A model generated the notes under the pieces. That model saw nothing but the letters and a program-made list of their open reading frames with translations. It was not told the origin of the DNA and searched no databases. From assembly GCA_002189035.1 (NCBI GenBank), contig NEEC01000009.1:248001-312000 (forward strand): a stretch of DNA of 64,000 bases, written 5' to 3'. This DNA comes from Utricularia gibba (Eukaryota > Plantae > Magnoliophyta). The translations under genes and the position numbers were made by a program. Shown here one piece after another: positions 1 through 64,000 of the stretch (positions are counted from its first letter, which is position 1; each line of letters begins with the position of its first letter).

Positions 1-78
1 GCCCCTGTAACCTATAGAAAGCAGAACAGCAGAACTCGTCCATTTCTAGGCACCGCAAATAAAGGTTGTAGTGTCTAT

Positions 79-330
79 CATGCATCCTATCTTTTCAGGC
101 ACCACAAATATGCTCTTGCGGTGCTTGGCATCGATGCGCTAGTAAACTGCATGTGTGTGGCACTCAGCCCGACCTCTCGCGTGTTAGGTGTGAAGTATTG
201 ACTGCACTGGATTGCCCTTCGAAGACATGCATCCTATCTTTTCAGGCACCGCAAATATGCTCTTGTGGTGCCTGGCATCGATGCGCCAACTGAGTGCATG
301 TGTGTCGCGTTCGATCTTTAGGTGTGATTC
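79..330. repeat. Degenerate ~147-bp tandem duplication in the element's subterminal region
   Basis: A 61-bp block catgcatcctatcttttcaggcacc(a/g)caaatatgctcttg... occurs at 79-139 and 226-286 with 3 mismatches; weaker similarity continues downstream. Confidence 0.85.
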
Positions 331-757
331 AAGTCGAGTGGATATTTATTTGGATCGTGTATATCTAACAAGGGCATACGGGCGTAGTTTATGCATAAAC
401 CACGCCCGTATTCCCTTGTTTGGTATACCCGATCCAATTGCTCCTAAGGGTCGAACGTTAATTAAGATTTAAAATAAATAAATATCCACTCGATCCAAAG
501 TATACCTAAGGATCAAATGATAATATCAATATTAAAATAAAAAAAGGTTCGATCCGAATCATACCTAAGGATCGAATGGTAATAAAAATATTAAATTAAG
601 GTATTATTTTAAATGAATATGCATATAAGAATATTTGAGAATTTATGTTTAGTTTTTTGTAATTTATGAAGTGTATATTGAAAAACCCATGATTAAAGTA
701 GAGTGAGTAACATCATAATGTTCCGAAATTCAAACCACTGTTACATGCCATGAATGT

Positions 758-2537
758 TCAAGCAAAAACTTTGTAATAATCCCACATGGGGTGATTAGCA
801 TCTAATGGAGGCTGTCCAATTCGTGCATGCTTCACGAAACTCGGTATATCATTTGCTTCTAGTAGACCTTGAAGGAAGATGCGTATTTCTCCACACTCAG
901 CTAACGCAGCATCTCTTACATCTATGTACTGGTATGGCGTTGGGAAGACAGCGTTGTCATGTTGTGGCACAATAAGCAGGATGGTCTAAATGTCAGTAGG
1001 AAACATGCATACCAGACTATATGATCGCAGATAGACTTAACTGGGTTTCTGATGGACTTGAACAGGGAGTTGTCAATAAGTAAGGTGTTGGTTGCATCAT
1101 ACCGACCCAAGAAGCCTTCATCTTCCCCTGGCAACTCCTTCAACACAGCAGCTTTTGACCTATTATCATGCACACGTACATGCGTTTTAGTTGTCTTCGA
1201 TGCATCCCATATGAAAGCCAGCGAGGTGTCTGCATCTGGCCCAAACACCCACTTGGTGATCTCATGTAGTTGTGCACTATAGAACATAGACAGATGTTAG
1301 AGCATTAGATAGCAGCACATGCTCTGCAGATTTCATGGAGTGGGACATATACCGACATCAAAGTTTGCAAGACACCATTCGATGAACTCACGAGCAAAGG
1401 GCCTGAGGAAGACTGCCAAACCAAGAAAAAATGGATTGGTTGAACATGACACAACCATGAGACAATGTTGCGGTGTCTTACTATTTCTCCCATATATCAC
1501 AGCATCTGGTTTCCGATGCAACCTTTGGTACTTGGCTTTGAAGACAATGTCTACTAGCACTCCGTTGACGTCCAACACAAGGAGCTTGCACACTTGTTGC
1601 CTGGGTGATGAACTGGGGCCAGTGTATGCCCACCTACTTTCATACCAATTTAGCCTTGCACGTAGTTGGACATTCTCTTCTAGGATTCTGTCCACATCCA
1701 CAGTAGCAGTTGGTTGCGGGTTGTCTTCCTCCACATTGCTCCCTACATCCTGTTGTCGATCAGATGCAAATGCTAGTGACATCTCTTCCTCAATGATCAC
1801 GTCGTCAGGCTTTGATCGCTCGCGTATCACTCTTCCTTGGCCACACCAGAAGTGGCGAGTACCGGCAACGTCCACCACAAGGGGTACTATGTCACTCAAT
1901 GCCTTACTCTTTTCACTAAACATAGTCAACAAGGCATCCACCCTCTGCTTCGATAGTTTATCAAATCCTACAACATGGATAATCGAATATCATAAATCAC
2001 AGTACACTAGTCATGCAACCATACTACATCACATATTACCCTTTGACTTTCCAATTTTCTTGGAGGAGCCGAGAGTAGTTGGAATTCGGAGGTCTTCCGG
2101 TGGACACACCCAAATGAAGCTTGTCCACCATGCATCATATCCACTCCGAATAGAATTCACAAGTGCAATACCTGGCTTACCCTTCAGCGAGAAATGATTA
2201 GTTTTCCAATTTCGAATGCACATAGTTATTGCAAAAAAACTGGTAGGGCCGGAGTAATTTGTTCCTCCATGCACACACTCAAAAACGCCAACACATGAGC
2301 GATTGAGCGGGGTGTCAGGTGGGACAATGGGACCTCCAAACATGCCAACAACTCGCATATGAATGGTGGTGGTGGCAAGCGAAGTCCACACCGAAAGTGT
2401 TCGGTGGACACCGAAAACCCGGTTACTCCCACCCTGGGTGGAACCACACCGTCAATTGTCTCATCGCTTGCCTTGTCCCATAGATTGTACGTCTCTGGGA
2501 TGGCGAACCGAAGTTGGAGTTTCATGGAAGTAAGCAT
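758..2537 (-). pseudogene. Transposase_28/TRP28-like + coiled-coil + FCP1/NIF-like HAD phosphatase-fold fusion gene, copy 1 (near-intact, at least one frameshift)
   Basis: N-terminal motif FRCGLRLPPPPFICELLACLEVPLSHLTPRS. C-terminal motifs KLLVLDVNGVL, FLRPFAREFIEWCLANFDVG, VLKEL, TLLIDNS, AVFPTPY and GQPPL..HPMWDYY. GT-AG introns at ~1969-2039 and ~1414-1481 join exons in frame. There is a 1-bp deficit in the A7 run at 2233-2239, and the junction near 1278-1350 is unresolved. Confidence 0.8.
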
Positions 2538-3047
2538 TTCTTGAGATAGACAGGTCAGATGAAAGCAAATGGGGGAGGGACCATGCGGTTAAGGTGGGGA
2601 CGGTGTGCCGTGCTTTGCAGTGTGTGGCGATTAGGTGCGTGGTGAAGGAGGGTGAGGACTGGGCCAGAGGGTTTGTTATAAGGCCCAAATATGCAAGGCC
2701 TAATATTCATTCCAGCCCGTGATTGCTCCAGGCACCTATTTCAAAGGTTGCGGTGTCTACAGCGTGTCTTCCAGACACCAAGAGCGGCATTCTGCATTGC
2801 CTGGAACGCATGTCTCCCAAACACTGAGAGCAGTCTTTTACTTGAATTTAAATAAATATGATATATATCAATTAATTAGGTATTAAAATAGTTAATAAAA
2901 TTAAAATCAAACTTAATTAACGTAAAAAAAATAGATGATTTTAAATAAATTCATATGTATAAGATTAAAAAAATCTTATGTAATCTCGAACTAATTTAAA
3001 CCCATAAAGGAAACATTCTGTAATTTATAATCTTAAATTTTGGTCTC

Positions 3048-3464
3048 GGTGTACCAGGCATCGCAAAAGTTTTGTCTCGGTGTCTACAAGACACCCCTTG
3101 TAGGCACTGCAAAACACTGCTCTCAGAGTCTGAGAGACATGCGTCCCAGGCACTGTAGAATGCCGCTCTCGGTGTGTGGAAGACACGATATTTTAATATT
3201 TTTATTAGCGTTCGATCCTTAGGTATCATTCGAATCGAGTGGATATTTGGTTATTTTAAATTTATATTAACGCTCGATCCGAATGATACCTAAGGATCGA
3301 ACGCTAATAAAAATATTAAAATATCGTGTCTTCCACACACCGAGAGCGGCATTCTACAGTGCCTGGGACGCATGTCTCTCAGACTCTGAGAGCAGTGTTT
3401 TGCAGTGCCTAAAAGGGGTGTCTTGTAGACACCGGGACAAAACTTTAGCGGTGCCTAGTACACT
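3048..3464. repeat. Long inverted repeat (~192-bp arms, ~33-bp AT-rich loop)
   Basis: Arms 3048-3239 and 3273-3464 are reverse complements with few mismatches. This explains the mirrored ORFs 2996..3229(-) and 3283..3582(+). A third partial copy lies at ~2764-2840. Confidence 0.95.
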
Positions 3465-3903
3465 GGACTTCCATGCACCAATAGCGGCGTATTGCAGTGC
3501 TAGGAACACATTTTCATCCAGGCACCGAGAGCAGATATTCACAATGCCTAGAATGCAATTCTTCCAATGTACATGTAGATAGTGTAGAGCATGCAATAGT
3601 TGCACTCAGATGTATGAGTCAACAGTGTGTGGAAACATGAAGCATCCTTCAACCCTATCATATCTTTCCACTGCAAATTCTAGTTTCCGGTGACTGTATC
3701 ACATTTGCTATGACAACTGTCCAGCATAAATAAGGCAGTTCACTGTGGGAAATAACCCAATGTAAGAAGCAAATCATGTCTAGAATAACTGATGTGTTTG
3801 CACAATATGAATACAACACAACGCAATGTTTATCAACTATTGGAAAATGAAATAAAATGTCTTTAAGCCAAATCAATAAAATATCAGGATTCATTAGTAC
3901 ACC

Positions 3904-5249
3904 TTATACCCTTCTTCGTGTGGTCTCTCTCCATTGCACAAACATTATCTCAGCCATTGAATCCCGCCACTGTGTCCACTCCTCTGGGTTTCTTATGGAG
4001 GAAATATGTTCATCATCTTCATATTCTTGTGAATCCGGATTGCGGTACTCTTCCGGAATGACCTCTTCCCATGGATCAGTTGGCATTTCTCGCCGAATAA
4101 AATTGTGAAGCAGGGCACATGTGAGTATGATACGAGTTTGTGTTTTAATAGGATAAAAACTATAACTTCGTAAAATACCCCACCTCATCTTCATTAGACC
4201 CCATGCCCTCTCAATAACATTCCTTGCAGAAGCATACCGCATGTTGAAATATTCCTTCGCATTCTGTGGAGCAATGGACCTGGCACCCCACTCTTTCATA
4301 TGGTACTGAAGACCCCTATAGGTTGCTAGAAATCCCTCTGCGTTTGTGTAGCCATTATTACACAAGTAATAATGCCCTACAAAAAAATGGAATACATGAA
4401 AGGTAATCATAACTATGGACTTCTACACATTGTAAGCACCTACCTTTGCGTACAGTGAATGCTCTTTGTCGACAAACTGCATCTCGTAGCACCCTGCTAT
4501 CAGCAGCGGATCCCTCCCAACCGGACAACAAATAGATGAACATGAGCTTATCATCACACACTTCTAGCACATTAGTGGGCACGATTCCTCCACTTTGGTT
4601 TATCCTGATCTTTGACTTTCACCTGAAAATATGAACCATCCAATGCACCCAAGCAATTCTGAAAAATAGAGCAGAAAGTTACAGCATGCAAAATACACGT
4701 TATACATCCACAACTACGAAGAAAAATCTTCTTGCATACCTCGAAAAATCTGAAGCTAGAATTGGGATCAGAAACATCAATTGGCATAGGTGTCTTAAGT
4801 AAATTTTGGTGCAATGACAGCACCGCCGACAATACCACATTGAAATATTTGGACACTGTCTAGCTGCTTCGCATGAATTCAAATTTTTGTTGCCTTGTTT
4901 TCATGTGATGACCCAAAATACCCAAAAACAATGCAACTTGCTATGGAACATCGACATACCTTGAAGTGGTTAGTCTACCATTACTTCGAAGAACATAACA
5001 TAACTTGTTGAAGACATCTGCACTTAATCGTAAGTTTTCAAGACAAGCACTCCTTGAATCAGATAACAAGGCAATCAAATGCTCTATTTGTCACGGTATC
5101 TTTTCTCGGTATGAGAACCGAATTCTCGTATCGGTTGGTGTACAACATAAGTGCAACATTATAACAATCATAACTTGCATAATACATAGATGCTGACCAA
5201 CGCAATGTGCCGCAGCAAGGGCAGCCAAAATAATCTTCTTTGAAACCAT
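3904..5249 (-). pseudogene. PIF/Harbinger DDE transposase pseudogene, copy 1
   Basis: Motifs ENLRLS..F..LC, CLGALDGSY, YLLSGWEGSAADSRVL, YYLCNNGY and RNVIERAWGLMKMRW. In-frame stops at 5091, 4941 and 4860, a frameshift near 4580, and the second catalytic Asp is replaced by Asn. Confidence 0.93.
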
Positions 5250-6650
5250 TGCAACAGCCTCAATAAGCAACGCACAACCTACTGCAATTTTCGGAAAAAA
5301 AAACCGACTCCATCATATGTGAAACAAAAAATAAGTACTCTTGGCTTAAATTGAAGTATGGGTTTTCGTCGAAATATCAGAATTCGAATTCACTCACCAT
5401 GTACTTGCAAAAACCCAACAGATTTATGTTGAAGAGAATGAACAAATACACAGATTTAATGTTACGAATTTGCTTATGGAGTAGAAGGGTATTATCGACC
5501 AAGTTGTATTTGTGTGAGGTGGGTTTTGATTGTAGGTTTTGTGAAACTAGTAACTGCAGGTTTAATTTGGGATAATACAAACTTTTGTGTTTTACTAAAC
5601 CATCTCAACAAGCACATACAACACTTTTTACCCAAGGGTTTAGAGGGCTAAACCCACCTAAAAAACGAGGCCCAGTGTTTTGGGAATCCCACTGGACCGC
5701 CGGTTTACGCGCCTGAGCCGCTAACCGCTGAAAAACACGTCCGGTCGCCCTCAAAACCGATATTGATTTTGAATTTTCACATCGGGGGTGTTTTGGGAAA
5801 AAGGGGCCTAAAATATGTCACGCCCCACGTCACTCGCGGTTCATCTGTCATCACCACGGTCGTCATCTTGGCCGCGTCTTTATTTCGCAAATTCTCATCA
5901 TTTTCCAAGCTTAATTCCTTTTAAATCAAACCATATTTGCTAGGTTTTTTTATTGCTCAAACATACACCTAGTGATAATTAAATTTTTTGTTTATATGCG
6001 TAATTTACAACTATATTTATTCAAATTCTAATCTGGAATCAATTTTTTAACCAATCCAGTTTTATTTATATAACATCATTTTAATTAATTGAAATGTCGT
6101 ATTAAATGCCATATTTGATTTATAATATAATCGAATAAATATCTTGTGTTCCTCCATAAACAGACAAGACATACGATCCAAAAGAAGAGCACTGCGCTGC
6201 GTAGGAACTAGGAAGACGCTGTGGGACCCGCGTCGCGAACTCCAGCGCGCCTCCCTTAGACGAATGCAATGACGTTGCCCGGGCGGCGCCCACCCGGACT
6301 GTAATTTCTGGACTTCAAAATTAGACCCGATCAATAAGTATAGTGGGGTATCCGTAGTGACGCTTGCTAGGGTTCGGTCCCCTCCCGTGAAGAAAACACA
6401 CCAAATATACTTGTCCTTAAAAGTAAAAAGATCATACACTTTTATTACCTAAGCATATCATTACAGACATAGAGTTTGAAGGAAGATGGGGATGCCTCAT
6501 TATTATGGGAGAAATCGAATTTGTGGGTTGGGAGGCTGTTTTTTTGGTTTTAAGGAAGGTTTAGGAGGACTTTTCCAGACATGGACCTACTTCATGATGG
6601 TTTGCGGTAATTTACTCGCACGGGGAGAGGGGTGGAACCGTCAAGGCTCT

Positions 6651-6661
6651 ATATATATATC
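6651..6661 (+). promoter_or_regulatory. TATA-box candidate of the NAC gene
   Basis: ctatatatatat followed by a pyrimidine-rich stretch, ~110 bp upstream of the ATG at 6765. Confidence 0.55.
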
Positions 6662-6764
6662 TCTCCTGGGGTCTCCGTTTTCCAGAGCCAGAAAAATCAG
6701 CACACCGGAAAAATTCAAGATAGAGGCGGCGCAGCATTGCCAAACTCCAAGTTGGTTGTCGTGG

Positions 6765-7726
6765 ATGAGTAAGGTTCAGGGTCAACTTCAAGGGCTGAAT
6801 TTGCCGTCGGGTTTTCGGTTTCACCCCACCGACGAGGAGCTAGTGCTGGATTATCTCTGCAGGAAATGCTCCGGTGACCGGATTCCGGCATCCGTCGTAG
6901 CTGAAGTCGATATCTACAAAGTTGATCCCTGGGAACTTCCTGGTACTTCCCTCCCCTTGCTCACTGCCCGAATTGGTTAGGCTCAATGTCTGATGAATGA
7001 CTCAAATTTTGTGTGGTCGTTGATGAGTGTAGGGCTGTCCTTGTACGGGGAGAAGGAGTGGTACTTCTTTTCACCCAGGGACCGGAAGTATCCCAACGGT
7101 TCGCGGCCGAATCGGGTGGCGGGATCCGGTTACTGGAAGGCCACCGGTGCGGATAAGCCGGTGGGTAAACCGAGGACTCTGGCCATCAAGAAAGCTCTGG
7201 TTTTCTACGCCGGAAAACCCCCGAGAGGAGTTAAAACCAACTGGATTATGCACGAGTATCGGCTGGCTAACGTCGATAGATCTGCAGGCAAGAGAATCAA
7301 TTCCAAGGTAAGAGCATATTCATCGAACACTTGGTGAACAAAGCTCTACATTCTTCCATCGATTCACGATTGTGTGTCCTTCAGCTCGACGATTGGGTAT
7401 TGTGTCGCATATACAACAAGAAAGGAACCATGGAGAAGCACTATCTCACCGATCAAAAGGGTGCTCACTTCTCCGATAGCGAAGAAGACGAAAGGTCGTC
7501 GGCGGCGACATTTTTGGGTGACGCATTACCCGATATGACTTCCGGCAGCAACGAGTATGCATCGCCGGAATCGAATCCCGGAGAGTCCATTCGCTCGTCG
7601 CCGGATATCCAAGACTTGGACTTTCTGATGGACTACGGCCAATCCTTGGAAGACGACGTCATGCCTGAAATGTTGTACAATGACCAGCTTGCGCTTTTTC
7701 AGGAAATGTTGGAATGCTTTCAATAG
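6765..7726 (+). CDS. NAC (ATAF-like): NAC transcription factor, ATAF1/ATAF2-like subgroup (3 exons: 6765-6942, 7033-7307, 7385-7726)
   Basis: [51 protein letters not shown] and [14 protein letters not shown]; canonical GT-AG introns. Confidence 0.95.
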
Positions 7727-12300: not shown

Positions 12301-12369
12301 ACAAAGACTGCCATAGACTCGACTTCTCTGCTGCAGACTGCAATTACGAAATTGCTTTCTGGACAGTAG
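9323..12369 (+). CDS. NDC1: Type II NAD(P)H dehydrogenase C1 (plastid/mitochondrial), multi-exon
   Basis: RPRVCILGGGFGGLYTALRL, EVDEWEIAPRFSDLL, VAVVGCGYSGVELAAT, GHPRIFAVGD and FQNLGEMMTLGRYDAA; stop at 12367-12369. Confidence 0.95.
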
Positions 12370-12544
12370 AAGAGAGAAGGTAAAGGTTACAATATCATTA
12401 GTGGTCCTCAAGCATTAGCCACGCATGTTGTAATCTGTTACTGAACTACATTATTTACCATCTATGTGTTTGTAGCAAAGTTTCGTCATCATTGTTTTGA
12501 ATTGCAACAGATGTACAATATTCACAACACAGCACTAGAACAGC

Positions 12545-15500: not shown

Positions 15501-15770
15501 ATCAAACTTCATTTCCCCTTCCTCTTCCTCATGATGCATACAGGAGATACCCTTTCCGTTTAGATCCTTGCCCCCGTTAAATAAGTGAACTTCACTGGGA
15601 TTCCAGATAAAATTCTCATCTCTGAAGCAAAAGGAGAACAATATGCATCTTTTATGAAGAGAGAAATGCTGTTGCAGGCGGGAAACTGCAGGATTACGGT
15701 CGTGGGTACTCTTGAAGATTGATCTGAAACACTGTAATGAAGAGCTGAATGGAGGCTTAACGGTAAACAT
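12545..15770 (-). CDS. Double polyketide cyclase/START-like (SRPBCC) protein with C-terminal repeat domain (At5g08720/PPP1-like), multi-exon
   Basis: VWNALTDYERLADFIPNL, VDGDFNKFEGKW, EQVEGDFQSFQGKW, GFMPMRKQLRKHGRVDIEKAI and ALEKWGGLLEVSRLL; N-terminal transit-peptide-like exon. Confidence 0.85.
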
Positions 15771-18391: not shown

Positions 18392-18400
18392 AAACCCTAA
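18392..18400 (+). promoter_or_regulatory. Telo-box (AAACCCTAA) upstream of NUP1
   Basis: Exact motif ~60 bp upstream of the ATG at 18462. Confidence 0.5.
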
Positions 18401-38600: not shown

Positions 38601-39668
38601 AATGGCTGAGTTTCCCATCTTCACTTTTCCATAGTCACTCGGTTTGAAGTTAGACATGATCTCTTTACATGGTGTGGCGTGATAGCTTGCTGCAGAATCA
38701 ACCACCCATTTTGAATTAGTGATTCTCACATATTCTCTTGCTGTCTGAGAAACCATGATTCCATTATCTTCTGAGTGTGGAAGTAAGACCAGCAGCTCCT
38801 CTTCCAAGAGAGCAAGCGCTATGCCTGAGTTTTCACCCTTCTTCTGCCCTTGAGGATCACTTCTGGAGTATCCTTTTGGTTGAGTCCTTAGCCAGAATTT
38901 ACATTGTCTTTTCAAGTGTCCCACCTTCTTGCAATAGTGGCAGGTCCTTGATTCTTCAAAGGCTTTATTTCTATCAGGTTCTTGCACCCTTTTTTTTTTT
39001 TCCAGTCCTTTTTCTTGTTCTGGGATTTCTTGCCTTTCCATTTTCCCTTCTGTTCGGTGACAGCTAGAGTCCCTTTAATATCTAGGTTGGTGTCTTTCTT
39101 CCTCAGTTCTTCGTGTAGTAGTGAGTTCACCACAGAGTCATAGGTCAGTCCACCAGAAGTGTGTGTTAAGATGACCATCCTAACCTCCCATCTTGGTGGC
39201 AATGAGCGAAGCAATGTAATTGCCTGAGTCTTCATCCAAGTCCATACCTATGGATGTCATTTCATCCACCATGTCTTCAAACTTGCTAATGTGATCTGCC
39301 ATAGGTTCATCATCCTTGTACTTGAGACTTGAGAGTTTTTGATCCAGCAACATCTTGTTTTGAGCTGTGTAGGGACGAAAACTTTCTTCAATTTTCTTCC
39401 ACAACTCCTTTACATCTTCATGATCCCTAAATCTTTTCTAATATGCATTTTCGATGCAGAGTTGCATATACGCACAGGCTTTTAAGTGCAAAGTTTTCCA
39501 GTCTGCCTCACTAGTCTTTTCTGGTTTTTTCTTTCCTAGAATGACCGTATTCCAGAGGTCTTTGCAGATGAGTACAGCCTTCATCTTCATCCGCCACAGA
39601 GAGTAGTTCTGGGAATTCAGTTTAATCATCCCAAGGAAATCCTCCATTGACACAACCCAAGGAGGCAC
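35676..39668 (-). pseudogene. Copia gag-pol polyprotein, disrupted
   Basis: KLNSQNYSLWRMKM, zinc knuckle CHYCKKVGHLKRQC, WVVDSAAS, LWHRRMGH, FIDDASRK, QLDIKTAFLHG, LYVDDML, YVDADLGGD and RTKHI. Confidence 0.95.
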
Positions 39669-49717: not shown

Positions 49718-52700
49718 GTTCCGCACGATGCCGGAGAGAAAAAACGGATGCCAGAGGGCGGAATCACAAAGATAGGGCTGGCTCTGAACTGCAGTCATAA
49801 AATGGTGTTGAGATGTGCGGATTTGAACTAATTTAGCGTGATTATAAAACGATTTAGAAATTATTACTACTATATTAGTTTACATATATTAATAAAATAA
49901 ATTGAATATATTAAAATAAAAACTCATTGATTATATTAAATAAATATTCATAAATATAAATACATGTATTAAAATTCATTAGAATACAACGTATTGATAA
50001 ACAAACATACATTCTTTTCAAAACTAAAACTGCGATAGAATACATAAAAATGCCCAATGAAACAAATCCACATTAAATTCCTAATAATCAAGCTTGCTAT
50101 TAACGTCGTGCAACTCTAGAATAAATAATGATTTCATGTATTTGATCTCTAATAGCATTCATATGTCAATCATGGATTAGTTCATATGATCTAACTTTGA
50201 TACATCTCGTCACACAATCAAGCCAATCTTGATACATTTGATCTTAAATTTTAAAAACATACAACTATTTATTTTTTTATAAAAAAATTTCAATACCTGA
50301 AAATGAAATGTATTTTCAAACTTGGCACTACTAGTCCCATTTAATACATCAATGCATTGATCTGTTTGATTTACTTCAACATCAGAAGTGATAAATTTGT
50401 CCAATTTTTATGCTAAATTTTACAAGCATTCAAACTCAACCTCATTTCTTTTCATCTTACCTCTAGGTATTTGTTTTTTTAGATATCTATTTTGTAAATA
50501 CATTTTAGGAGAGTCAATCATTGCATCATTTTGTTGACACCTGATACACAAAAATTTCAAATCATTGAAATATGAATTTACAAATCAAAAGAAAATATTT
50601 GGTGCTTTAGGGTCAAATTCAAAAAGCTTAGTGTTTACTATGTAAAAGTTTGTACATTCTGATTTTACAATTGATTCTAAATCTTAACTAAAACTAATAG
50701 AACCTAAACAACAATGATAAAGATAAGATAAAACGATAGAATTACTCAAATACCAATTTAAACAATACAAATGCAATGCTTCAGTTTTCTAGCGGTGAGA
50801 TGCTCATTCAATTCAGTAGTCTTAATTTGAATTTTCTAAAGCACCTTATATTTAAGTTTATCATTTCATAAATTTATTAAGATTCCAATTTTATTGATCT
50901 CTGCTCCAAAAAAATCATCCATGTAACTATATCCATAATCCATTAATCTACTTCTAAATTGAGTTTCCTAAACAATTTATATTTTTTATTTCCTTCCTGA
51001 ATCTATCATGTGTTGTTTAAGATTTACATTATTACATTATCATTTTCAAACCTAAACTAAAATGAGCATTCCTCCCCTTTTCTCAAGCTATCACTTGTAA
51101 TTTAGGTATTTATACTCAATATAGATAAACTAACTGCATAAAATGATAGTAAAAGCATTTCCGTTTTCACACTGATAAATAGAAAATAATCAGGAATAAC
51201 GCAAAGGTAGGATTAGTAGATTTTTGAATGTGTTTTTAAGAATGCATGTTTTTTTTAAAATATTTATAATTAAAGATTAATGATGGTCATTAATAAAGGA
51301 AAAATATGATGAATTTAATGCAATATACTTTAGACAATAGATGCAAACATCAATAGAGTGCATTCGATGTATGAACCATAAATTGATTCATTTAGTGGAC
51401 AACTTTGATTCTACATTGACTCTATTTTACATAACTTTTAAATTATCTTACTTAATTTATAAGTTATTTAAATTTTGTAGATGTGTTTTATGTTCTAATT
51501 ATAAATTATTTTAAGTCATTTATAAGAAAATTTTAAAAATAATAATCTACATATTTGCATATTTAAATTAAATACATTGGAGAAATAATCAAAATACTTA
51601 TATTTATTATATAATACATTTTTCAATTCAAATAAATTATTTTATATTTGGCAACGGTTCACTCCTCCACCAACCCCCTTTTTGTAGATTTTAAACGTTT
51701 TCTTCACTATAATTTTTGTTAGGATTCCATTGAAGTTCATCCATTTTAAATAGCAACAATTTTTTTAAAAAAATCAGATGATTCTGACAATGAATTCTCT
51801 GTTGTAAATCGAAAAGTTACTATTCGGATTATTAGTAGCAATTGTAAATTTATTGAACGTCTTGTTTCTTCGTAATGTCTATTGAGATGGAGAAGTTAGG
51901 TATAGAATGATTAAGAAACATTTTGGGTAGTAATTGGATATGCTCTTATTAATTACTTAGAATGACTCACAATATTTTCTTTTATTTTTGTGTCATACTT
52001 AACAACAAAAATGGCGTGATCTTGTGTCAACCTATCACTGTTAAAGAACAAGTTGCAATATTTTTAGTGACAATGAGACTTAAAATGAAAATCAATAACT
52101 AAAATAATGGCTTTAGAGAGCTGGCACACTACAAGCAAGAATTTTTATAATATCCCTTATGCATGTGCTTTATGCATGGATATCCTCTGTTTTTTGTACA
52201 ACTTTATTCATTTGTGCTTTGTTCCAATTTTTTGTTGTATTATTGAAAAAATTTTCTATTTTCGAGTGTTATAGGATATGAAGATGATCATTCAAGGGGT
52301 TGACAACTTCTAACCACCGTTGATCTTGAGCCACATAAGATGTTGATCACGTGGTTGTCTATTGATATCAGAGTTTGACTTGCTTCTAAATGAGAGCTTT
52401 AGACAATAGTTTGTGAATCAACTTCTGTTTCATTTGAGCAAGTTTGTGAGAGATATGTTACTTCCTGTCCAACTTATATTTTCATTTGATGTATTTATAT
52501 TAGATGATATAAATCGTACTATTGGAGGTGTCGGAAATAAGTTACACAAATCTGTTGCATATATGATTACTCTATTTCAATTTTCTGCTTTTTCTTTCAA
52601 TAAACACTATGTTTCAACTGATGATGACTTTCTTATCTTCAAGTATCCATATTTTGTAGACTTTAGAGTTTGATGCATGATAACACATATTTTTGAGTGT

Positions 52701-53499
52701 TTAAAAATAGAAAAATAATTAATATTTTGTTATAAAACTTAAATTTTATTGTATATTTCTGTATTTTTTTAACTAGCATCTATGATTTACTCTCAATTTT
52801 AGTTTTAATTATTCTCTTGAGTAATACAATACGTTTTAATAAAAATACTACTTCTAGTTTGGAGTAGTTTTAGCTTTACGTGCAAACTATTTACGATTTC
52901 TTTTTTTTGTTATTGTTTATTTTAGATTGTTCAACTCTAAAACATGGATAATGTTTATGTTATGTTATGTGTGTGTTTTTTTTTCCTTTGTCATAAATAG
53001 TTAAACACCTAGTGGTGCCATAGGACAAAAAGGGAGAGATATGTTTGTTGTTTATTAAATCACACTAACCACACAATCACACTCTTTTCTTAACAAATCA
53101 GGATAGATACAACAAGGGAAAATAGTGACAAGTTCATCATAGGCCAACCTTAATTAGAGGTACATTAAAAATTAGGAGAAAACAAAGGTTTAGGTAGATG
53201 CGATTTTAGGATGAGGTGGGATGATGAAAATGATGATAATGTTACTCCTTGAAGTCCCGAAGCATCACTTTCTTCTATTTTAGATAAATATATGATTTTT
53301 CTATTTATTACTTTTCTGCATATAATTGTGAGACTACTAGTCCTAACTTAGACTAAATATTTCAAATATAAAAAAAACAATATGTATCAAACTTTACATG
53401 ATAAGCACTTAACTCCTTAAGTTTGTCTCTGATCCATTATATTCATATTTTTTGTATGATTGGTTGTGAATTAGATTTATAAATTTTATTTGATAGTAG

Positions 53500-55800
53500 A
53501 ATTTACAATTTACAATGACTTGCATAATTTTCGTTTATCATTGCATATTCTATAGATACTCCCATTTTGCTTTTGTTATCAAACTTAATGGAAAGTGTGT
53601 ATGGAACCTGTACAAAACATATGCATCCAAATAACTTCAAATGGTTAACTATTGGAACTTGATTCATCCATAATTCATATCGTATCTTGTATTCTTTAGT
53701 TCCTTATGTAGATAATTTATTTAACTAATATACAACAGTATGGACGGCTTCCCAACAAAAGAATTTTGGTAAGTTTCCTTATGATAATAAACATGACATA
53801 TCCATAATTTTTTGGTGGTTTCTTTTATAGATTCTATTTGTTGAGAAGTATAAGAGTCAATAAATTTATATTCAATTCCAGGCTCATGATATAAAATTTA
53901 TAGTTAATGTGGTATATATTCTCTACCATTGTTTGATATCAAATCCTTTATTTTATTTCTATTTTGATTTTCAATTAATACCTTAAAATCTATGAAACAT
54001 TTACTAACTTCTACTCATGATTTGAGGAAGTAAACTCAAACATATTTTGAGAATTCATCGATAAACAACATAAAATATCAATTCCCAGCTTGTGGCACTA
54101 GTATAATTTGGTCATATACATATAAACAAATCACTTCTAATGCCTATTGTGTTGCCCAAATACTCTTTGCAAATGGAGGCCTAGATATTTTTTTGAGTTA
54201 AACAAATCTCACAACAACCCCCATCTTGTTATAGTTTTTGAACTTCATTAATCAATTTCTTTTTTAGTAATGACATTTGGTTGTGATGTCTAAATCTTCC
54301 AAGGTAGATTATCATATTTTTCTTTGCTTGTGTAGATAGAGATATAGTTGTAATATTTTATATTTTGTTGAGAAAGTTAATAAAAAATACATTATTTACC
54401 ATGAGGATATTCAGAATTTATTTTTCTATAGGACTACTGATATGACATGTATTATCATAAAAGTGAATATCACAGTTTTTTCTTGAGGAGCTTACCTAAA
54501 CTTAATAAATTGTGTGAAGCGGCTGATATATGAAACACATTCTTGACGAGGATATATTTTGTTGTAGTTTTTAGTCTTACACTGTCTCTTTCAATGACTG
54601 TGATGTAAGTTCCACTTGCTATTTCTATTTATGTGAAGGTCGTTATATAACTAATGAAGACTTGTTTGTCATTAACAATGAGATTTGTGTTTCCACTATC
54701 CAATTGTCATACCCAATTACTTATGTACTTTAGTGCAAAGAATAGTGTGGTTCAGCAAAATGAATAAATATTCATGATGTCTTTTTCATTTAAAACATGT
54801 TGTGATATATCATTTTGGGTATTGTCAAGGAGTATGAAGTGAATGTGATATTGATTCCTCCTTTTACTTCTATTTGTCTATGTTTCATCATTTATTGCAT
54901 GACTTTTCATTTCAATGGATAGATTCTTTCATGGTATCTTTTTTACTTCACAAGTGAAATAATTTATCTAGATACCAAAATCAATCATCTGATACATATT
55001 TCTATAGCTTGTGATAAGGGTATGGAGTATGTAACCTAGATATATACGTTCCTAGTTTGCTCATGACTCCATGAGATTTTCTCATTTGAGAGTTTGATTC
55101 TCTTTAATTTGGTGGTTTGTAAAAATTTTTTTATGAAGATGCATTTTCTTCAAATGTTTGAGCATATGTTTTTGATCTCCATTCACTTTAATTTTTGAAG
55201 ATTTAGCATGGATCAATTTTCTAGGTGATGAATATGAAGGAAATTTAATTCTAATTCATAGCAAAGAGATAGCATATGGATGATAATGTCTTTAAGTCAA
55301 TCTTCTTAGAACTTAAATTCTAATAGTCACATTTTGCAAACACCTACAATGATAAGCTTAGTCAATTAATCAGAAGAGCTTACCATTTGATCATTAAGTG
55401 TGCACCAAATATCAACAATTTGAACGGCTTTTCTTTCAAGAGTCCCTATGTAAGTGTCTTCCAATACTTTCCATGATTCTTTGAAAGTTTTGCATTCTAG
55501 AATATGTTCAAATACTTTGTGGGTTACAGCTTGATTTAAAATATCATGAACTTTTTTTTTTCATTCTTTTTGGAGGCAATGAGAACCTCTACATTTGTTT
55601 GTTCTGGAGATTTTATGGTGAAACAACAAGGCAAATCAAGTTCATTGAAGTAATCTATCATTTTTTTTGACCATGTAAGAAACATGATGGACTCCCTTCG
55701 ATCAAAGATTGGAGTCACAGAATTTTGGACTACCATGTGAGTCGAAAATATAGAGAAAACAATGTACAAGATGGAGGATTTGAAGTAGCAGAAATTCAAA
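53500..55800 (-). mobile_element. Possible highly degenerate LINE (L1-like) remnant
   Basis: Only scattered, frameshifted hints on the minus strand: YLFA(DD)-like, YLG, IYLWK-like, CEIC and AKSIW (zf-RVT-like). No continuous ORF. Confidence 0.25.
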
Positions 55801-55902
55801 AATAGAGCATGTACATGAGTCGTTTATGTTGAGTTCACTATGAAGAATTCAATCAAATACTTCAAGTATTGAGTCCTTAGACTCCGTTGCTTGGTAAGCG
55901 AA

Positions 55903-55920
55903 ATATATATATATATATAT
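55903..55920. repeat. (AT)9 microsatellite
   Basis: Direct reading of the sequence. Confidence 0.85.
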
Positions 55921-58489
55921 TTATTTATTTAAATATGTATATATGAAATAGACAAAAAGCTATGTGAATCAATTAGATCTTTTTTTTTTTTGAAAAAAAG
56001 AGTTGTGTATTGGATATCAAGAATGCTTAATATTTATAGAAGAGCACTTTATCTTTTAACTATTGTAAGCTTATGTAGATAATTGTTGTATCAAATCTAT
56101 TACTAGCCATTGCATAATTATAAATTTTCTTATCAGTTATCTTTTTCTTCAATATAGTTTATAACCAATTCTTAAAACTTGATTAGTCGATGTAGATGGC
56201 TTGTAATTTTCCTATCAATGAAATATATCAATATATTATATAGGCGTTAACAATTAGTTACAAGGTGCTATTTAGTTATTTGTTAATCTAATGAGCATTG
56301 ATTGTACATATAGATGAGTTATTATTTATATACTTCATGGAATTTTTTTGTAGATATATATTTATTTTTTTGATACAAGAAAATCTTTCTTTTTTATTCT
56401 TTTGAGTTCAAGACATGAAATATAAAGGATTGTCATTACATCATGATCTATCTAGCCAAACATGTGGTGGTTTCTTGCCTCGTTTACTATGAGATATGTA
56501 AAATAGAGCAAAATGTGACCTTGAACTTTAATTTCTTTTTCAAAATTCTTAGAAGTGTAAGAGGTGTATGTTTCAAGAGAGAGATTCCAGAATTGTTTTA
56601 GACAATTGAGATTATATGTTAGTGATTTTGAGAATGTGGAGAAGGGTATAAAGATCTAAAAGTTGCATATTCATGTAGTTTTCTATAATAATTTTTTTGA
56701 AGCTGTTGGCTTGGCAACATCTTCTGCTGGTTTGGCTTATCTAAGTAATCTTTATTTATGAGAAAAACAATAGTTGTCTTTAGATTCTCTAAAAAAATTT
56801 ATCATACAATATATTCTCATCAAGCTGATGACAAGATGCTGGTAAGCTGACCTCAGGTATGTGTTTGAATTTATATTGATCATGGCTTGTTTCTACAGTT
56901 TTCGCTCTTGCTAAGCTAATAAACATGAAAGAGGATCATAGCACGTTCTATACTATTGTAAGGTAATTTTACAAGGAAAAAAAAATTCTTTTGTCCGTAT
57001 GGCTCTTTAGTGTGCTCGTCATGTTGAATTAAGCTAAAAATGTAGCCATAATGTAAACCATATCACTGTTTAGGAAATGCTACTTGTTAAGTATCTTTTT
57101 CTACATGTATTATTATATGTTAATTTAGGATTAAGTCACTTAAATAGGAGTTATATTGATAAATATTTTATTTTATTAAAAAAAATTCTATTTTCATTAT
57201 TTGTCCTTATTTTTCTTGTCTTATTTGTGTATTTTCACTCAAAGTTGCAAGAGGTAGTCTTGAAGTGTAGTAGGAGATTTACAAGGGACCATACACTAAT
57301 ATTTTGTAACTTGTATGTGAAATAAATCAATCATGGGTGGAAGACTGACATTAGTCAGGGTTCTTGATTTATGACATGTCAGAATCTACAATAATAATTG
57401 GACGCTTGCACGAATGGTAAAGATGGGTGCGCAAGCAAGACATAAAGAATGATGGAAGGAGAGCATAGTAAATTAATGCATGTGGAAGTAACTTAAAAGA
57501 AACTTGAAATAATTTGGATGAAGACCTTTTTTCACTTTGTTTTCACACTTGTACTTGTTCTTCCTCTCCAAAGAACAATTTAGTTTTCTGCTTTTCATGG
57601 TCATTCGTGGTTAAACCTTTTTAGTTTTTGAGAATAGATGAAATTTACTTCTACATCTTGAGCATCAATCTTGGTTCTTTACTGAATTTCTTCTGGATTT
57701 TGAATATTTTCACACATCATGTTATAGTATTTCTGTAACATTTCCTACTAACGGTCCATGAGTAGCAAGCTACTCCTTGCAAATTTTGATGAAGAGCAAG
57801 ATGAAGAACATCATTTTCAATCATATTGGTTGGAGGGAAATAGCGAAATGTTTGTGATTAGGATTCTGTGATAATGGATGGGTAGTAGCCTTGTACTCAT
57901 CATTGGTCATTGGAAACAACTGGACACACACTTAGAATTCGGTTTTGAGGGCAATCGACGACAATCCTCTTGTCATCTCAATTGTCCAATGTGGAATAAC
58001 ATGAAGCTATTTCCATGTCTGCTTATCAATCAGAGTATAAGGAAGAGTGGATTATTCCTTGCTCCTATAAATAATTATTTGGAAGGAATTAGTGAAAGTC
58101 GACATGAGGATAGACAAAAGGAGAAAACAAAATCAATTTCCCAATAAGTGCTTCCCTTAGCCAAAGTCTATTACTTACGTTATATCTTTTGTTTTCGTAT
58201 TTCAAAAACTTCTTTATATAAGCCCATGAAAATTTGTAAAAGTTTAGTACAAAACATTTTTCACAAAACTCAATTCCCTGATATCGTTACTCGTACTACA
58301 TTTTATTTTAATTCTATATTTTGTGTATTAAAATTTATTGAGGAAATGTTATGCAATACCACTCTAGACCAAATGAGCCAAAAGATGCTAGCTTGTAAGG
58401 TACTCTTGGGCATGGTCTCCTCCCTTGCCCATGACATAAATTTTGATATTCTATATAATACTTTGGATGCGTTATTATAACATGGCATT

Positions 58490-59749
58490 TATGTTTCTAT
58501 TGTGGGAAGAAGGGTCACCTACACAAAGATTGTCATGGCTATCAACAAGCTTCACAAGAGAAAGGAAAACAGTGGAAGACCAAACAGCAGGTAGAGAACA
58601 ATACCTATGCATATTTGAGTAATGTTGATGATGATCTTCTTGTGTTGCTAGCTATAGAAGCAGTAGAAACAGGTCTCTTTAATTCCTGATTTGTGGATTC
58701 TGCGGCATCCTTTCATGCGACTTCTCACAAGACTGGTATGTTGAACTATGAAGTGTGTCATGCTAGCACTGTAAAGATAGGAAACCAATCAATTTCAGAA
58801 ATTGTTGGTATTGATGATCTTATAGTTACTACAAATATGGGAATCCAGCTAAAGTTGCAGGGGGTGCATCAAATCCCTCCTTTGCAGGTCAACTTACTCT
58901 CTGCAGGAGAATTAGATGTAGCAGGATATCATCATAGTTTGGGATCACAAGTATGGAAGCTTATAAGGGGTTCTATGATTGTTGCCAAAGGAACAATGGA
59001 AGTGAGGTTGTACAAGACCGAGTTGAAACAAGGCTTCATGGAGATACATACCATTACTGGTAAAGGTGAGTCTTACACTCTTTGACATAAACGATTGGGT
59101 CATCTATTAGAAGCTAGAGTTATTTAGTTGTCCAAAGATGACTTGATATATTTATCTGGTGCACCCTCTGCATGTGAGCACTGTATATATGGGAAGCAAC
59201 ACAAGATTGCATTCAAGTCATATATGCATAGGAGTAAAGAGAAGTTGGACATTGTATTCTCAAATGTTGGAGGTCCTGTAAATATTCCCACAGCTGGTGG
59301 GATGAGACACTACTTGACCTTTGTAGATGATGCAATGCGAAAGACTTGGGTTTATCTGGTGAAGAGGAAATCAGAAGTCTTTGAATGCTTCAAAGTGTTT
59401 CATACGATGGTGGAAAGAGAGACCAGTTTGAAGCTGAAATGCTTCTGGATGAACAATGTAGGAGAGTATTATAGTGAAGAGATCAAGAGATATTGTCAAG
59501 AGCTTGGTATTAAGAAGGTTGCTACAGAACTTGGAATGCCTCAAAATAATCCAATTGCTGAAAGGCTAAACTGAAACTTGTTTGATAAGGTAAGGTGTAT
59601 GTTGAAGGGAGCAGTCTTACCTAGAAAGTTTTGGGGTGAGGCATTAAAGACTGTATTTTACTTATCTAATAGGAGTCCTAAGAAAGCTTTGAAGCATGGT
59701 GTGCCAGAAGAAAAATGGAAAGGCATACCACTTAGCTTGAAGCATCTAC
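58490..59749 (+). mobile_element. Truncated Ty1/copia remnant (zinc knuckle, protease, integrase)
   Basis: CFYCGKKGHLHKDC at 58492, FVDSAASFH, FVDDAMRKTWVY, NPIAERLN and FWGEALKT; sequence breaks at LKHL(R), where the Harbinger TIR begins. Confidence 0.9.
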
Positions 59750-60195
59750 GGGCGCGTTTGGTTGCTGGGTTTAGGTGGGTTGCGGCGTGGATTTAGACAT
59801 AAACCCACGTTTGGTTCGTGGGTTTCAGGTTTGACCATAAACTGGGCGGGAACTCGTGGAGCTAGGTTTAGCTTAAACCTGGGGGGGGGTCGGTTTAGCT
59901 AAACCCAGCTTGGTGCTTCCACTTTTGCCCTTGCGTGAACCACATTTGAACGCAAATCTACAACCCAAACTTTGTGATTTGCCGGTGGTGTCGCGTCTTC
60001 TTTGGGCGCAAATAAACTAGGTCTTTCGATAAGTGTGCTTTCTGTTTTTGGTGGATTGGTCCACGATAGCACCACGCTTGTCCAACCACAGCAGCACCGC
60101 ATAGTGGGTTTTTATCTGTGACTTTCCAATTTCAGAATCCGTGTTGCCGTGTGTGTGGAATTATTTGTATTGATTTTTGCGACTGTTGAGGGGAC

Positions 60196-61517
60196 ATGGA
60201 TTCTTTCATGGAGGGTCATGTCATCTTGAGTGTAGTAGCGGCAGTTTTGGTCGAATACTTGGTGCAGATGAATGTGTTAGTATACTTACATTGGAAAAAA
60301 TATCATAGGGGACATAGGGTGAGACGCAGGTATTCACTTACGCACAACTCAAGTTGAGTATATTAGTAGGTTGGTGAGTGATGTCAACAGCGCATCCATT
60401 GAGAACTTGAGAATCAGCCGAGATGCCTTGGGTATTTTATGTAGCCTATTAGAAAATTGTTCTAGTTTAAAGGCTGGAAAATATGTAATGATTCCAGAGA
60501 TGGTTTGTATGTTTTTAGGAATATTAGGTCATAATAAAAAAATGCGGGTGCAGAAGCACGTCTACGGGAGGAGCACCGAGACTGTATCCCGGTGCTTCCA
60601 AAAGAAGTTGCATGCGGTGCTTTGCCTCCATAAGGTGCTCTTAGAGACCCCAGTAGTTGCTTGAGAACGTGCATCCAAAGGAAAGTTCAAACACTTCCAG
60701 TTTGACACATCTTTCATGCTTCTTTTTAAGAATGTATCTAACATTGATTATGCATTTGTAGGGTTGTGTTGGGCCATAGATGGTACATACATCGGTATAC
60801 GAGTTAACAAATGTGATGCTGCAAGGTACAGAAATCGAAAGGGTGTGATATCCACCAACGTGTTGGGTGTATGTGATGAACACATGAAATTTATATATAT
60901 GCTTGCTGGGTGGGAGGGGTCTGCTGCAGATAGTCGGGTGCTAAACGATGCACTCTCACGATCTAACGGCTTCCGTGTATGCCCATGTATTTCACTTGTT
61001 TAGCCCTTGCGTATGTGATTCCAATGATTTCATGCACCATGTATACGTGATGACACAGCTATGTGATAATGGATACGCCAATAGGGAGGGCTTTTTGGCA
61101 CCATACCATGGAGTCCGTAATCACTTGAAGGAGTGGGGCTAGGGAAATGGAGTACCCTAGAATGCGAAGGAGCTATTCAACATGCGGCATGCATCAGCCA
61201 AAAATGTGATTGAACGAGCTTGGGGCTTGATGAAGATACGGTGGGGTATACTATGGATGGCTAGCTACTATTCGGTAGACACACAGAATCGCATTGTATT
61301 GGTATGTGCTTTGCTCCATAACCTCATTCGAAAGGAGATGGTGGTCAATCCCCTGGAGGATGAGATCCCATTGGACTTCTAGGATGAAGCTGGGGACATG
61401 AGTGATGCAGAAGACGTCACGACATCTTCCGGTGGAAATTAGGCATGGAATAGGTGGCGTGACGAGCAAGCTGAGGGGATGTACACCGAGTGGATGGCAT
61501 CCCGCAGATGCCGCTAA
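60196..61517 (+). pseudogene. PIF/Harbinger DDE transposase pseudogene, copy 2
   Basis: ENLRISRD, AIDGTYI, RYRNRKG, YMLAGWEGSAADSRVL, CDNGY and KNVIERAWGLMKIRW; several stops and frameshifts. Confidence 0.93.
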
Positions 61518-62287
61518 TGTAGCACTGCTTTAGACATTGTGATGCTAGTGGTTTTCCTAGATTCCCTTTTGGAACCTATCGTGTCGTTTGTATTGGATTT
61601 GTTAAGTACAATTGTTTGCATTGCAACGTGAACACCTGTTTGCATCGTATTTGGTTGTTGCTGCAAATGGTGTGGAGATTGTACCGTAGTGTCATGTGTT
61701 ACCATGGGGTAACATGGTACCACATGGTGGAGCATTGGTGCCAGCACCACAATCTTTAGATGAGGTGCTGCAGAGGCTAGTACGATACCAAAGTTGTTAG
61801 CACCACCGCGTGTTTCATCCTATCCGATGCTGTCAACATTTAAGATGTAGATCAGTGTCAAGCTGATGCATATTAGCGAGGGTATTGGTAGTACAACAAT
61901 CTTGAAATTCACCAAACATCGTGATCTGTAATATGCGGTGCTTCTAAATGCTTGGGCTACGCTACGCACACTGCAGCACTGCGTGCCGCCTAATCCGGTG
62001 CTCTGCATTTTGAAAACAAATTGGCAAAAAAATACTGCAGTTATCCAGCATTAAATGCGCTGGGCAGTTGACAACCGCCCAGCGCTATTTATGCCCCCCT
62101 GCGCACACTAAAGGCGCCTGACATTGAACACTTTTCAAAACACCTTCATTAATTGCGCAGCAGCACCGCGAAAACAGATGGGTTGACAACCTCTCCACAA
62201 CAACGTCGCGATGGTAGGAACCTTTGCCTTTAGCGTTAAAAATACTTCGTTTCGGCCGTCGAGTAAGACGTCTGTTGTTTTCCGTAG

Positions 62288-63720
62288 ATGTTGACGTGTG
62301 AGAAACTGCGTGCCCGCTTCTCAATTCCCGACGGTTACGCGATGCGGTATAAACAACCAGGTGAAACGTCCGACACCAAACCGCCATCCAGAGTCGGAGG
62401 ATCGGGTTTCGCCATCAGCATCGAGCACTTTCGGTGTGGATTGTGACTGCCCCCGCCCCCTTTCTTGGTGCAGATACTTGATGCACTCCACATCCCACTC
62501 TCCCACCTCACACCACGTTCTGTGGCGCACATACTCGCATTTGTGCAAATCTGTGAAGAGGAGGATATACCCCCGGAAATACGTGTCTTCTTTGCGGTTT
62601 TGTTTGTATGCAACGTAAGGGGAGTCCGCACTACTCGCTTCATGGAAAACTTGGTGTGGTTCTGGTTACAGACGTGAGAAGCACATATGATGATTGGTGG
62701 ACTAGTTTTGTATGGGTATGCCCACCCACCACTCTAGATTGGCCAACAACGTTGACAGTGTCAGAGAATGTTGGACACCCATCAGGTAATCACAAACAAT
62801 TACTTCGAATATTCTAACGTCGTCTGCAATAGTACTCATGCTTTTTGTTGTTATGGTCGTTGTAGACATCGAGGTATTGCCAAAACGTGCAGCAAGGAAG
62901 TTTGTAAATTTTTTGTCTTACAGAACAAAGTCACTAAAGGACGTGTTGCCCCCCTTTGTCAATGCCCCTAGGACACAGCATCTGTGGTGTGGAACCCCTC
63001 GACACCGTAGACAACGTGAGATTAGGAATTAAGATCCTGAGAAGGTGACCCATGAAGAGGATGCAGATGTGCAGCCAGAAGTCAGGGGCAACACGGATGA
63101 GTGCCAACACCGATCTCGACACATGACGATGGGTGTGGTGCTACCACTGCAAAGTATATTGAAGTGGAGAGACTGTATGTAGAGAATCTTGAACTTTTGG
63201 CTTGCATGGTATGAACAAACATGGTCATATAGTGGAGTGTCAAGTAATAACGCAGCCCCACCATGTAAGTTGTTAATATTTGACGTGAATGGCGTAACTG
63301 CGGACATTGTGTATCCTCGCGAAGTTAGGTGGGGAGCGCCGAAGCCAGATGCCGTCATATACGGGCGAAATGGTAATATGGTGTATTTCATATGCATTTA
63401 ATATCCGGTGCATGTGTCAGAACTATTTGTTGTGGTTGTAGTGTATCTTCGACCAGGTGCACGTGAGTTGATACAGTTTTGCATGGAACACTTTGACGTC
63501 GCCATTTGGTCTTCCAGAGGACAGTAAGATTGACCAGTTAGTAGGTAATGGTATCTGCACGGTGCTGACCTTTCCTTTTTCTGACAAGATGCAAGGGATG
63601 TGTGGCTATAAAAGGCCATCTCCAATACCCTTCACGTGTAGTGGTGTGTTGTGAACGTGGAGAAGAGTTGATGAAATTTTGTGTGAGAGCATGAAGGAGA
63701 GGATCTGCTGCTACATAGAA
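62288..63720 (+). pseudogene. Transposase_28/TRP28-like + FCP1/NIF-like fusion gene, copy 2 (decayed, 3' end missing)
   Basis: MLTCEKLRARFSIP, EHFRCGL*LPPPPF, LSHLTPRSVAHILAF, YDDWWTSFVWVCPP, CKLLIFDVNGV, KPDAVIYGRN and FDVAIWSS; colinear with copy 1; TGA at 62444 plus frameshifts. Confidence 0.85.
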
Positions 63721-63817
63721 GTTCTAACTTCTACTGATAGTTTCATATTGTAAATCATTAATCTGTTTAACACTTGGAGTATTGTACTCTTGGTGAAAAC
63801 TCATATTAAATTTCATT

Positions 63818-63952
63818 GCCATTCGCCAGGGCGATTCTGAAATCGCGGAAGTTTTGTTTGATCAAGCCGCTCAGTATTGGAAACAGGCTATCACACTTAC
63901 TCCTGGTAATTATATTGAAGCACACAATTGGTTGAAGATCACGAGACGTTTC
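63818..63952 (+). other. ycf3: Nuclear plastid DNA insertion (NUPT): ycf3 3' exon fragment
   Basis: Translates [45 protein letters not shown], the C-terminus of plastid Ycf3. Confidence 0.92.
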
Positions 63953-64000
63953 TTGGAGTTTTTAAGTTCAAGAGGTTTCCCAGTTTTTTAGGTTTTACTT

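Follow-up and report, generated by a model that had tools for sequence, protein, structure and literature searches.

A PIF/Harbinger lineage in Utricularia gibba that likely carried an ancestral, spliced Transposase_28-NIF gene downstream of its transposase

Can a plant DNA transposon family hold, beside its transposase, a long-lived gene in which a retrotransposon-type domain is joined to a host phosphatase-type fold? This question is raised by a 64-kb stretch of plant nuclear DNA from Utricularia gibba (contig NEEC01000009.1, positions 248,001 to 312,000; here called the window and numbered from 1 to 64,000), in which a genic core (a NAC gene, an FG-repeat protein, an amino-acid permease, and others) is flanked by two transposon-rich edges. 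PIF/Harbinger elements are textbook two-gene DNA transposons, in which a DDE_Tnp_4 transposase is paired with a Myb/SANT-like ORF1, as in the PIF and Pong/mPing types. One PIF/Harbinger copy lies at each edge of the window, oriented outward: copy A on the minus strand, from 5673 to 1, and copy B on the plus strand, from 59750 to about 63524. Both share the same layout: a Harbinger-type end is followed by a DDE_Tnp_4 transposase of three exons and then, further downstream in the same orientation, by a gene combining a Transposase_28 (TRP28) domain with a NIF/FCP1-like region. We consider it likely that the dead copies A and B represent two deeply diverged branches within a single PIF/Harbinger lineage with an ancestral spliced TRP28-NIF gene, to which an accessory role may be ascribed.

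The first-pass annotation had described a Harbinger transposase followed in the same orientation by the same fusion gene, twice. This arrangement was recovered in both copies with the Pfam profiles DDE_Tnp_4 and Transposase_28 and was collinear in tblastx. The peptides quoted at that stage were located at MLTSMKLQLRFAIPETY (reading from 2537, minus strand) and MLTCEKLRARFSIPDGY (from 62288, plus strand), as well as YDAWWTSFIWVCPP in the open reading frame (ORF) 2029-2391 (minus strand) and YDDWWTSFVWVCPP in the ORF 62608-62817 (plus strand). The distance from the transposase stop to the fusion gene ATG, given earlier as 1.4 and 0.8 kb, measured 1.37 kb in copy A and about 0.77 kb in copy B. 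A tblastn scan of the 64-kb window detected only these two copies and no third.

All DDE_Tnp_4 (PF13359) matches were above the gathering score. In copy A (4.6e-11), the transposase pseudogene covers 3904-5249 on the minus strand, collinear with that of copy B, with exons at about 5249-4739, 4657-4443, and 4377-3904; it contains in-frame stops at 5093, 4943, and 4862 and a frameshift in exon 2, and its second catalytic Asp is replaced by Asn (LCNNGY versus LCDNGY in copy B). The three-exon pseudogene of copy B, at 60197-61517 on the plus strand, gave two matches (5.3e-07 and 4.4e-06) and was aligned to that of copy A by tblastx. It retains the residues D (AIDGTY), D (LCDNGY), and E (VIERAWG) and is broken by five stops, one at 60662 and the other four in exon 3, and by a frameshift near 60340. 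The pattern of residues and stops in the two copies fits decayed copies of a once active enzyme.

Both transposase-side ends (5673 and 59750) start with GGGC..CGTTT, as Tourist/PIF ends do, and their partner ends lie beyond the window. The terminal sequence of copy A, GGGCCTCGTTTTTTAGGTGGG (5653-5673, minus strand), is of the Harbinger/Tourist type, occurs once in the window, and forms the outer boundary of the repeated family; GGGTTTAG-type subterminal motifs are found inward of it. The Harbinger-type terminal sequence of copy B, GGGCGCGTTTGGTTGCTGGGTTTAGGTGGG (59750-59781, plus strand), likewise occurs once in the window. Copy B is preceded by CTAC, has its far end beyond the window, and is inserted into a Ty1/copia integrase (copia sequence at 58693-59749), with the Pol_BBD and rve domains of the copia element directly upstream.

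When the fusion gene was modeled from conserved GT/AG sites, five exons and about 505 codons were obtained for copy A (758-2537, minus strand), running from an ATG at 2537 to a stop at 758: exon 1 at 2537-2040, exon 2 at 1967-1482, exon 3 at 1412 to about 1346, exon 4 at 1276-1042, and exon 5 at 985-758. Copy B holds the first three exons (62288-63523, plus strand), at 62288-62785, 62866-63372, and 63442-63523; the later exons are missing, and the sequence continues with plastid-like DNA. In both copies, exon 1 corresponds to the TRP28 domain, which makes up the N-terminal third of the gene. Exon 2 encodes a linker that is poorly conserved apart from one short stretch (..HFWCG..), followed by the start of the NIF unit with motif I (DVNGV in copy A, FDVNGV in copy B), and exon 4 of copy A holds motif IV (LLIDNS). 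The intron between exons 1 and 2 has an identical position, phase (phase 1), and acceptor (TTGTAG) in A and B. The copy A gene is damaged in two places: one base is lacking in a T-run near 2232, and the donor of the intron between exons 3 and 4 has decayed. Since other contigs, including an otherwise identical one from run X1, have one extra base after 2232 and so an unbroken frame there, the frameshift in exon 1 of copy A is either private or an assembly error. Exon 1 of copy B contains one stop and one frameshift near 62610, and exon 2 two stops, and exon 3 ends in an intact CA/GTAAGA donor.

The Pfam profile Transposase_28 (PF04195) was matched above its gathering cut-off of 26.2 bits in copy A (4.5e-10, 40.1 bits) and copy B (3.8e-07, 30.7 bits). 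Language-model features gave a TRP28 score of 0.97, the best three matches being TRP28 clusters, to which 68 of 100 matches belonged. A word-index search found no close homologue of the TRP28 ORF, and AlphaFold2 prediction for the isolated 103-aa TRP28 ORF gave a predicted local distance difference test score of 36.7, which was unusable, so that no fold was obtained. The earlier statement that Transposase_28 is known from extra ORFs of Ty3/gypsy retrotransposons agrees with the literature, in which the domain is found in 23% of elements of the Retand group of the Tat clade (Neumann et al. 2019, PMC6317226). Sharing of the domain with Retand is itself directionless, and TRP28 may have passed from the retrotransposon to the Harbinger lineage or the reverse.

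The Pfam profile NIF (PF03031) matched one exon of copy A weakly (2.2e-03, 18.2 bits, below the cut-off of 21.8), and language-model features scored NIF at 0.89. A host NIF unit, taken from the plant protein P0001 (Pfam NIF 1.1e-40), spanned by tblastn the whole C-terminal half of the copy A gene (E value 2.5e-23), with about 33% identity and an alignment extending to the ..FGQxP..W.FY tail. The phmmer search of a library of 1.84 billion protein representatives, with the 202-aa exon-2 ORF as query, returned three matches (P0001, P0002, and P0003), all host-type plant NIF proteins. P0001 and P0003 contain tandem NIF units, and P0001 also a DUF724 domain. P0002 is encoded on L001, a Joint Genome Institute (JGI) metagenome contig, by a host-type plant NIF gene (2375-4193, plus strand) that contains an LDING motif and is interrupted by at least five introns. 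As L001 has neither TRP28 nor transposase, it represents the host type and was used as the reference for host gene structure. PDB sequence searches with single exons or one host NIF unit gave no real match, and the BRCA1 matches that appeared there were located in an intron translation. The closest structures in the PDB, reached with a joint profile of host and element NIF sequences, were UBLCP1 (3shq, 2.9e-06) and SCP1 (1ta0, 3.9e-04).

Comparison with L001 placed three introns of the element's NIF unit at host positions. The intron before ..F(L/R)RPF (NIF intron 1) is in phase 1 in copy A, copy B, and L001; the intron after ..WSSRxQ (NIF intron 2) is in phase 2 in copy B and L001, its donor being decayed in copy A; and the intron after ..(R/L)NP is in phase 0 in copy A and L001, the corresponding exon being missing from copy B. 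Two further L001 introns are absent from the element's NIF unit. Because the three positions coincide and the phases match wherever they are readable, the NIF unit appears to have been captured as genomic DNA and not as a retrocopy.

The catalytic signature of NIF/FCP1-SCP1-type phosphatases is DxDxT or DxDx(T/V) (PMC4436666, PMC8546626). Motif I of the element does not match it: LDVNGV in copy A and FDVNGV in copy B align with DIDYT of UBLCP1 and DLDET of SCP1. The NIF module retains the nucleophile Asp and the SCP1-like LIDNS motif IV. At the position of the general acid/base Asp, both copies have Asn, and the host relatives have either Asn or Gly. With DVNGV in place of DxDxT, the module may be read as a binding or very slow variant. 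The fusion protein has a NIF fold and, as judged from these motifs, is probably not a normal phosphatase of the type that acts on the RNA polymerase C-terminal domain (CTD). Of the 'captured host enzyme fold' proposed in the first-pass annotation, the homology to the host NIF fold was borne out, but a working enzyme probably was not present.

Whether the fusion gene belongs to the element was examined by mapping contigs of the same organism, from two DNA runs at low coverage, on 1-6000 at a likeness of at least 80% (691 contigs from X2 and 1127 from X6). Every bin from 1 to 5800 is covered, and coverage is zero at 5801-6000. Contigs of other copies cease to match at 5672, and seven X6 contigs continue from there into unlike flanks starting with TAA. 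Such unbroken tiling of 1-5672, with a stop at the terminal repeat, places the extra gene inside a high-copy repeat unit that spans transposase, spacer, and fusion gene as well as 757 nt beyond the latter. The region downstream of the fusion gene (1-757, minus strand) is inside the repeated unit, many X2 and X6 contigs reach position 1, and the copy A element extends past the start of the window. As stated earlier, no closing terminal inverted repeat was seen between transposase and fusion gene; an inverted copy of either terminal sequence was absent elsewhere in the window with up to 3 mismatches allowed. A candidate closing end at 380-407 (GGGCGTAGTTT / GGGCGTGGTTT) was rejected, being the center of a palindrome and a chance-level pattern (5 found, 2.5 expected); family contigs run past this GGGCG-type palindrome to position 1.

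The difference in spacing between the copies is explained by a segment private to copy A (2735-3325), recognized in the repeat search and by joints in contigs of other copies as a spacer insertion or inverted duplication. It consists of an AT-rich stretch and one palindrome arm and lies outside the usual structure of the family. Contig joints lead from 2734 to 3326 with some 31 letters of other sequence at the junction, and one contig bridges the spacer (2563-2734 to 3326-3602). About 590 nt of the copy A spacer are thus absent from other family copies, and the ancestral spacing would have been about 0.8 kb in both branches.

The two copies are clearly diverged, as previously noted: tblastx aligned them collinearly across transposase and fusion gene with 31-63% amino-acid identity, and blastn found just one match, of 91 nt and 78%, so the split between A and B is deep. 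In the ungapped tblastx segments, the proportion of synonymous differences (pS) was 0.82, that is saturated, for both genes, and that of nonsynonymous differences (pN) was 0.31 for the transposase and 0.39 for the fusion gene, a ratio that is biased because such segments are selected for amino-acid similarity. In controls with the two shifted frames, pN was not well below pS (0.40-0.53 versus 0.29-0.50). The fusion gene has diverged about as much as the transposase. Protein similarity could not persist at such divergence without constraint, so the fusion gene would have been functional for most of the time since the A/B split, and this comparison of sequences indicates that both genes were long under purifying selection. 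The first-pass proposal of an old class II family carrying Transposase_28 fused to a captured host NIF/FCP1-type fold is supported by the saturated synonymous sites, the tiling of the repeat unit, and the shared introns.

The same observations bear on whether the gene might be a functionless passenger, a Pack-type transduplicated host fragment hitch-hiking in the family. The NIF part is clearly host-captured, introns included, both copies are broken, and no transcript was found in run X11, as a passenger would predict. However, amino-acid similarity persists over about 245 aligned codons despite saturated synonymous sites and lost DNA similarity, the pN of the fusion gene is near that of the transposase, and the two branches have kept the same splice sites and phases. 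A neutral passenger would have become unrecognizable at the A/B divergence; we therefore regard a passenger as improbable. Adjacency by nesting, in which the fusion gene would derive from another element (for example, a remnant of a Retand-type extra ORF) that came to lie beside a Harbinger copy twice, seems less plausible still and is very unlikely. TRP28 is best known from extra ORFs of Ty3/gypsy elements, and retrotransposon debris is abundant in the window, with copia sequence at 58693-59749 and 36027-39041, but neither fusion gene is adjoined by a long terminal repeat, gag, or pol, two branches without DNA similarity have identical order, strand, spacing, and introns, and the family contigs are continuous across the spacer. 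The fusion gene might, on another account, have replaced the Myb/SANT partner, with TRP28 binding the element ends in a two-gene family. No Myb-like ORF was visible in either copy within the window; the repeat unit of copy A, however, runs at least 757 nt past the fusion gene stop and off the window, which leaves room for another gene, and we give this replacement little credence.

Several points weigh against descent of both copies from one lineage with a selected TRP28-NIF gene, in addition to the bias of the pN/pS ratio. Copies A and B are both dead pseudogenes. Copy A is itself flanked by CAG/AGT and not by TWA, and in neither copy does the window reach the distal end, the expected Myb/SANT gene, or the target-site duplication, so that placement inside shared terminal repeats is presumptive. 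No relative of the TRP28-NIF fusion was found among the 1.84 billion representatives by phmmer with the exon-2 ORF, nor in the JGI metagenome contigs scanned with the A/B alignment; the sole locus from that scan, L002, was a chance match (HRKPDAVIY) without NIF, TRP28, or transposase. RNA run X11 contained no matching contig, which is not evidence of silence, and splicing is accordingly read solely from the conserved GT/AG sites. Finally, the function proposed for the fusion gene is hypothetical.

Our favored scenario, an ancestral TRP28-NIF gene in one PIF/Harbinger lineage, would have unfolded as follows. A UBLCP1/SCP1-like plant NIF gene would have contributed one complete unit, acquired as genomic DNA, which makes up the C-terminal two thirds of the fusion gene; the ancestor of A and B would have held an extra spliced gene of about 505 codons between the transposase and the distal end. 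This gene would have descended vertically together with the transposase, and purifying selection would have acted on both for equally long. With the Asp nucleophile and DN(S) kept and the general acid/base Asp lost, the NIF module may be phosphoprotein-binding or very slow, and, tethered by TRP28, it would most likely act on, or compete for, a phosphorylated target of the host in transcription or chromatin silencing. Its role would then be accessory or anti-silencing rather than in DNA cleavage. We tentatively propose, as one possibility among others, that a deep PIF/Harbinger branch encodes a regulatory pseudophosphatase, in which the TRP28-tethered NIF module binds a host transcription or silencing phosphoprotein without turnover and so protects or boosts the element. 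By analogy, such a protein might be comparable in function to VANC of VANDAL and form a mirror of the host PMD-PP7 module.

Plant DNA transposons are known to carry accessory genes, such as the ULP1-like protease of KI-MULEs and VANC of VANDAL MULEs. The fusion gene resembles these in being a host-derived or novel extra gene retained beside a transposase; unlike them, it belongs to another superfamily, contains other domains, and has a putative anti-silencing role. Compared with canonical PIF/Harbinger elements, the family has in common an intron-bearing DDE_Tnp_4 transposase, a GG(G)C..GTTT terminus, subterminal repeats, flanks of other copies that begin with TAA, and insertion near genes (the copy A terminus is about 1.1 kb upstream of the NAC gene), but differs in the added, conserved five-exon TRP28 and NIF gene downstream of the transposase and in a Myb partner that is not visible in the window. 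As in the Retand extra ORFs, PF04195 is matched above the gathering score in both copies; in contrast to them, the domain sits in a class II element, where it forms exon 1 of a spliced gene and is joined to a NIF unit. With the plant NIF proteins bearing a DxN/GxL motif (P0001, P0003, and the product of the L001 gene), the element shares a whole NIF unit and the loss of the second catalytic Asp; unlike the host genes, it has a single unit with two L001 introns fewer, a linker of about 110 residues to TRP28, and a high copy number. In the PMD-PP7 module (MAIN/MAIL1 with PP7L, and the selected fusion MAIL3), which acts on gene expression and transposon silencing (PMC7156037), a domain of the Ty3/gypsy extra-ORF type is likewise paired, whether in cis or in trans, with a phosphatase-type domain under purifying selection. 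This likeness is an analogy only, as PMD is not TRP28, the PPP fold is not the HAD/NIF fold, and the PMD-PP7 genes are host genes and not transposon-borne. A literature search found no description of a Harbinger element with a NIF, HAD, FCP1, or TRP28 gene or with a third ORF.

A lineage that gained a spliced host gene, fused it to a domain of the retrotransposon-accessory type, and kept it under selection would mean that the PIF/Harbinger superfamily also recruits accessory functions, and the fusion gene would provide a concrete protein candidate for interference with host transcription or silencing. It would also be the second independent pairing of a retrotransposon-type accessory domain with a phosphatase-like domain, after PMD-PP7, and would suggest that such a functional module recurs. 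Annotators of this genome should be aware that some of its NIF/HAD 'genes' may be cargo of transposons.

Repeats and palindromes were observed in the noncoding parts of copy A. The spacer palindrome has 191-nt arms at 3049-3239 and 3273-3463, which are 97% complementary and separated by a 33-nt loop. Within 1-757, direct repeats of 147 nt (79-308) and palindromes (310-540) were identified by the repeat search and are related to the spacer at 3189-3323; the interval 79-600 as a whole contains 55-nt and 147-nt repeats and smaller palindromes akin to the spacer palindrome. The copy number of the repeats downstream of the fusion gene differs among family members (contig joints from 61 to 226 and from 292 to 146). 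These structures could be protein-binding subterminal repeats or a foldback insertion.

Beyond the copy A terminus, a NAC-domain gene with several exons was read by eye from ORF translations at 6486-7726 (plus strand). Since its start is about 1.1 kb from that terminus, the transposon lies in the upstream region of the NAC gene. At the other edge, the Ty1/copia remnant at 58693-59749 (plus strand) comprises a Pol beta-barrel and an integrase core, and its integrase frame breaks exactly at the copy B terminus; the remaining part of the interrupted integrase should mark the far end of copy B. A plastid-derived fragment at 63830-63952 (plus strand) encodes a C-terminal part of Ycf3, a photosystem I assembly protein (NCBIfam NF002725, 2.9e-14, profile positions 128-166 of 173). 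As it closely follows the truncated copy B, insertion of plastid DNA may have cut this copy. The 8 kb at 50001-58000 have a G+C content of 25-30%, with no tandem repeats at a score of at least 80 and no ORFs of at least 110 aa. In the genic core, long ORFs without a Pfam match at 20184-24081 (plus strand) are Ser/FG-rich and read like a NUP1/NUP136-type nucleoporin, and those at 26533-28498 (plus strand), also without a Pfam match, resemble an EEIG1/EHBP1-type plant protein, both as judged from the translations. A second Ty1/copia element, at 36027-39041 (minus strand), contains RVT_2, gag-pre-integrase, rve, Pol_BBD, and zinc knuckle domains.

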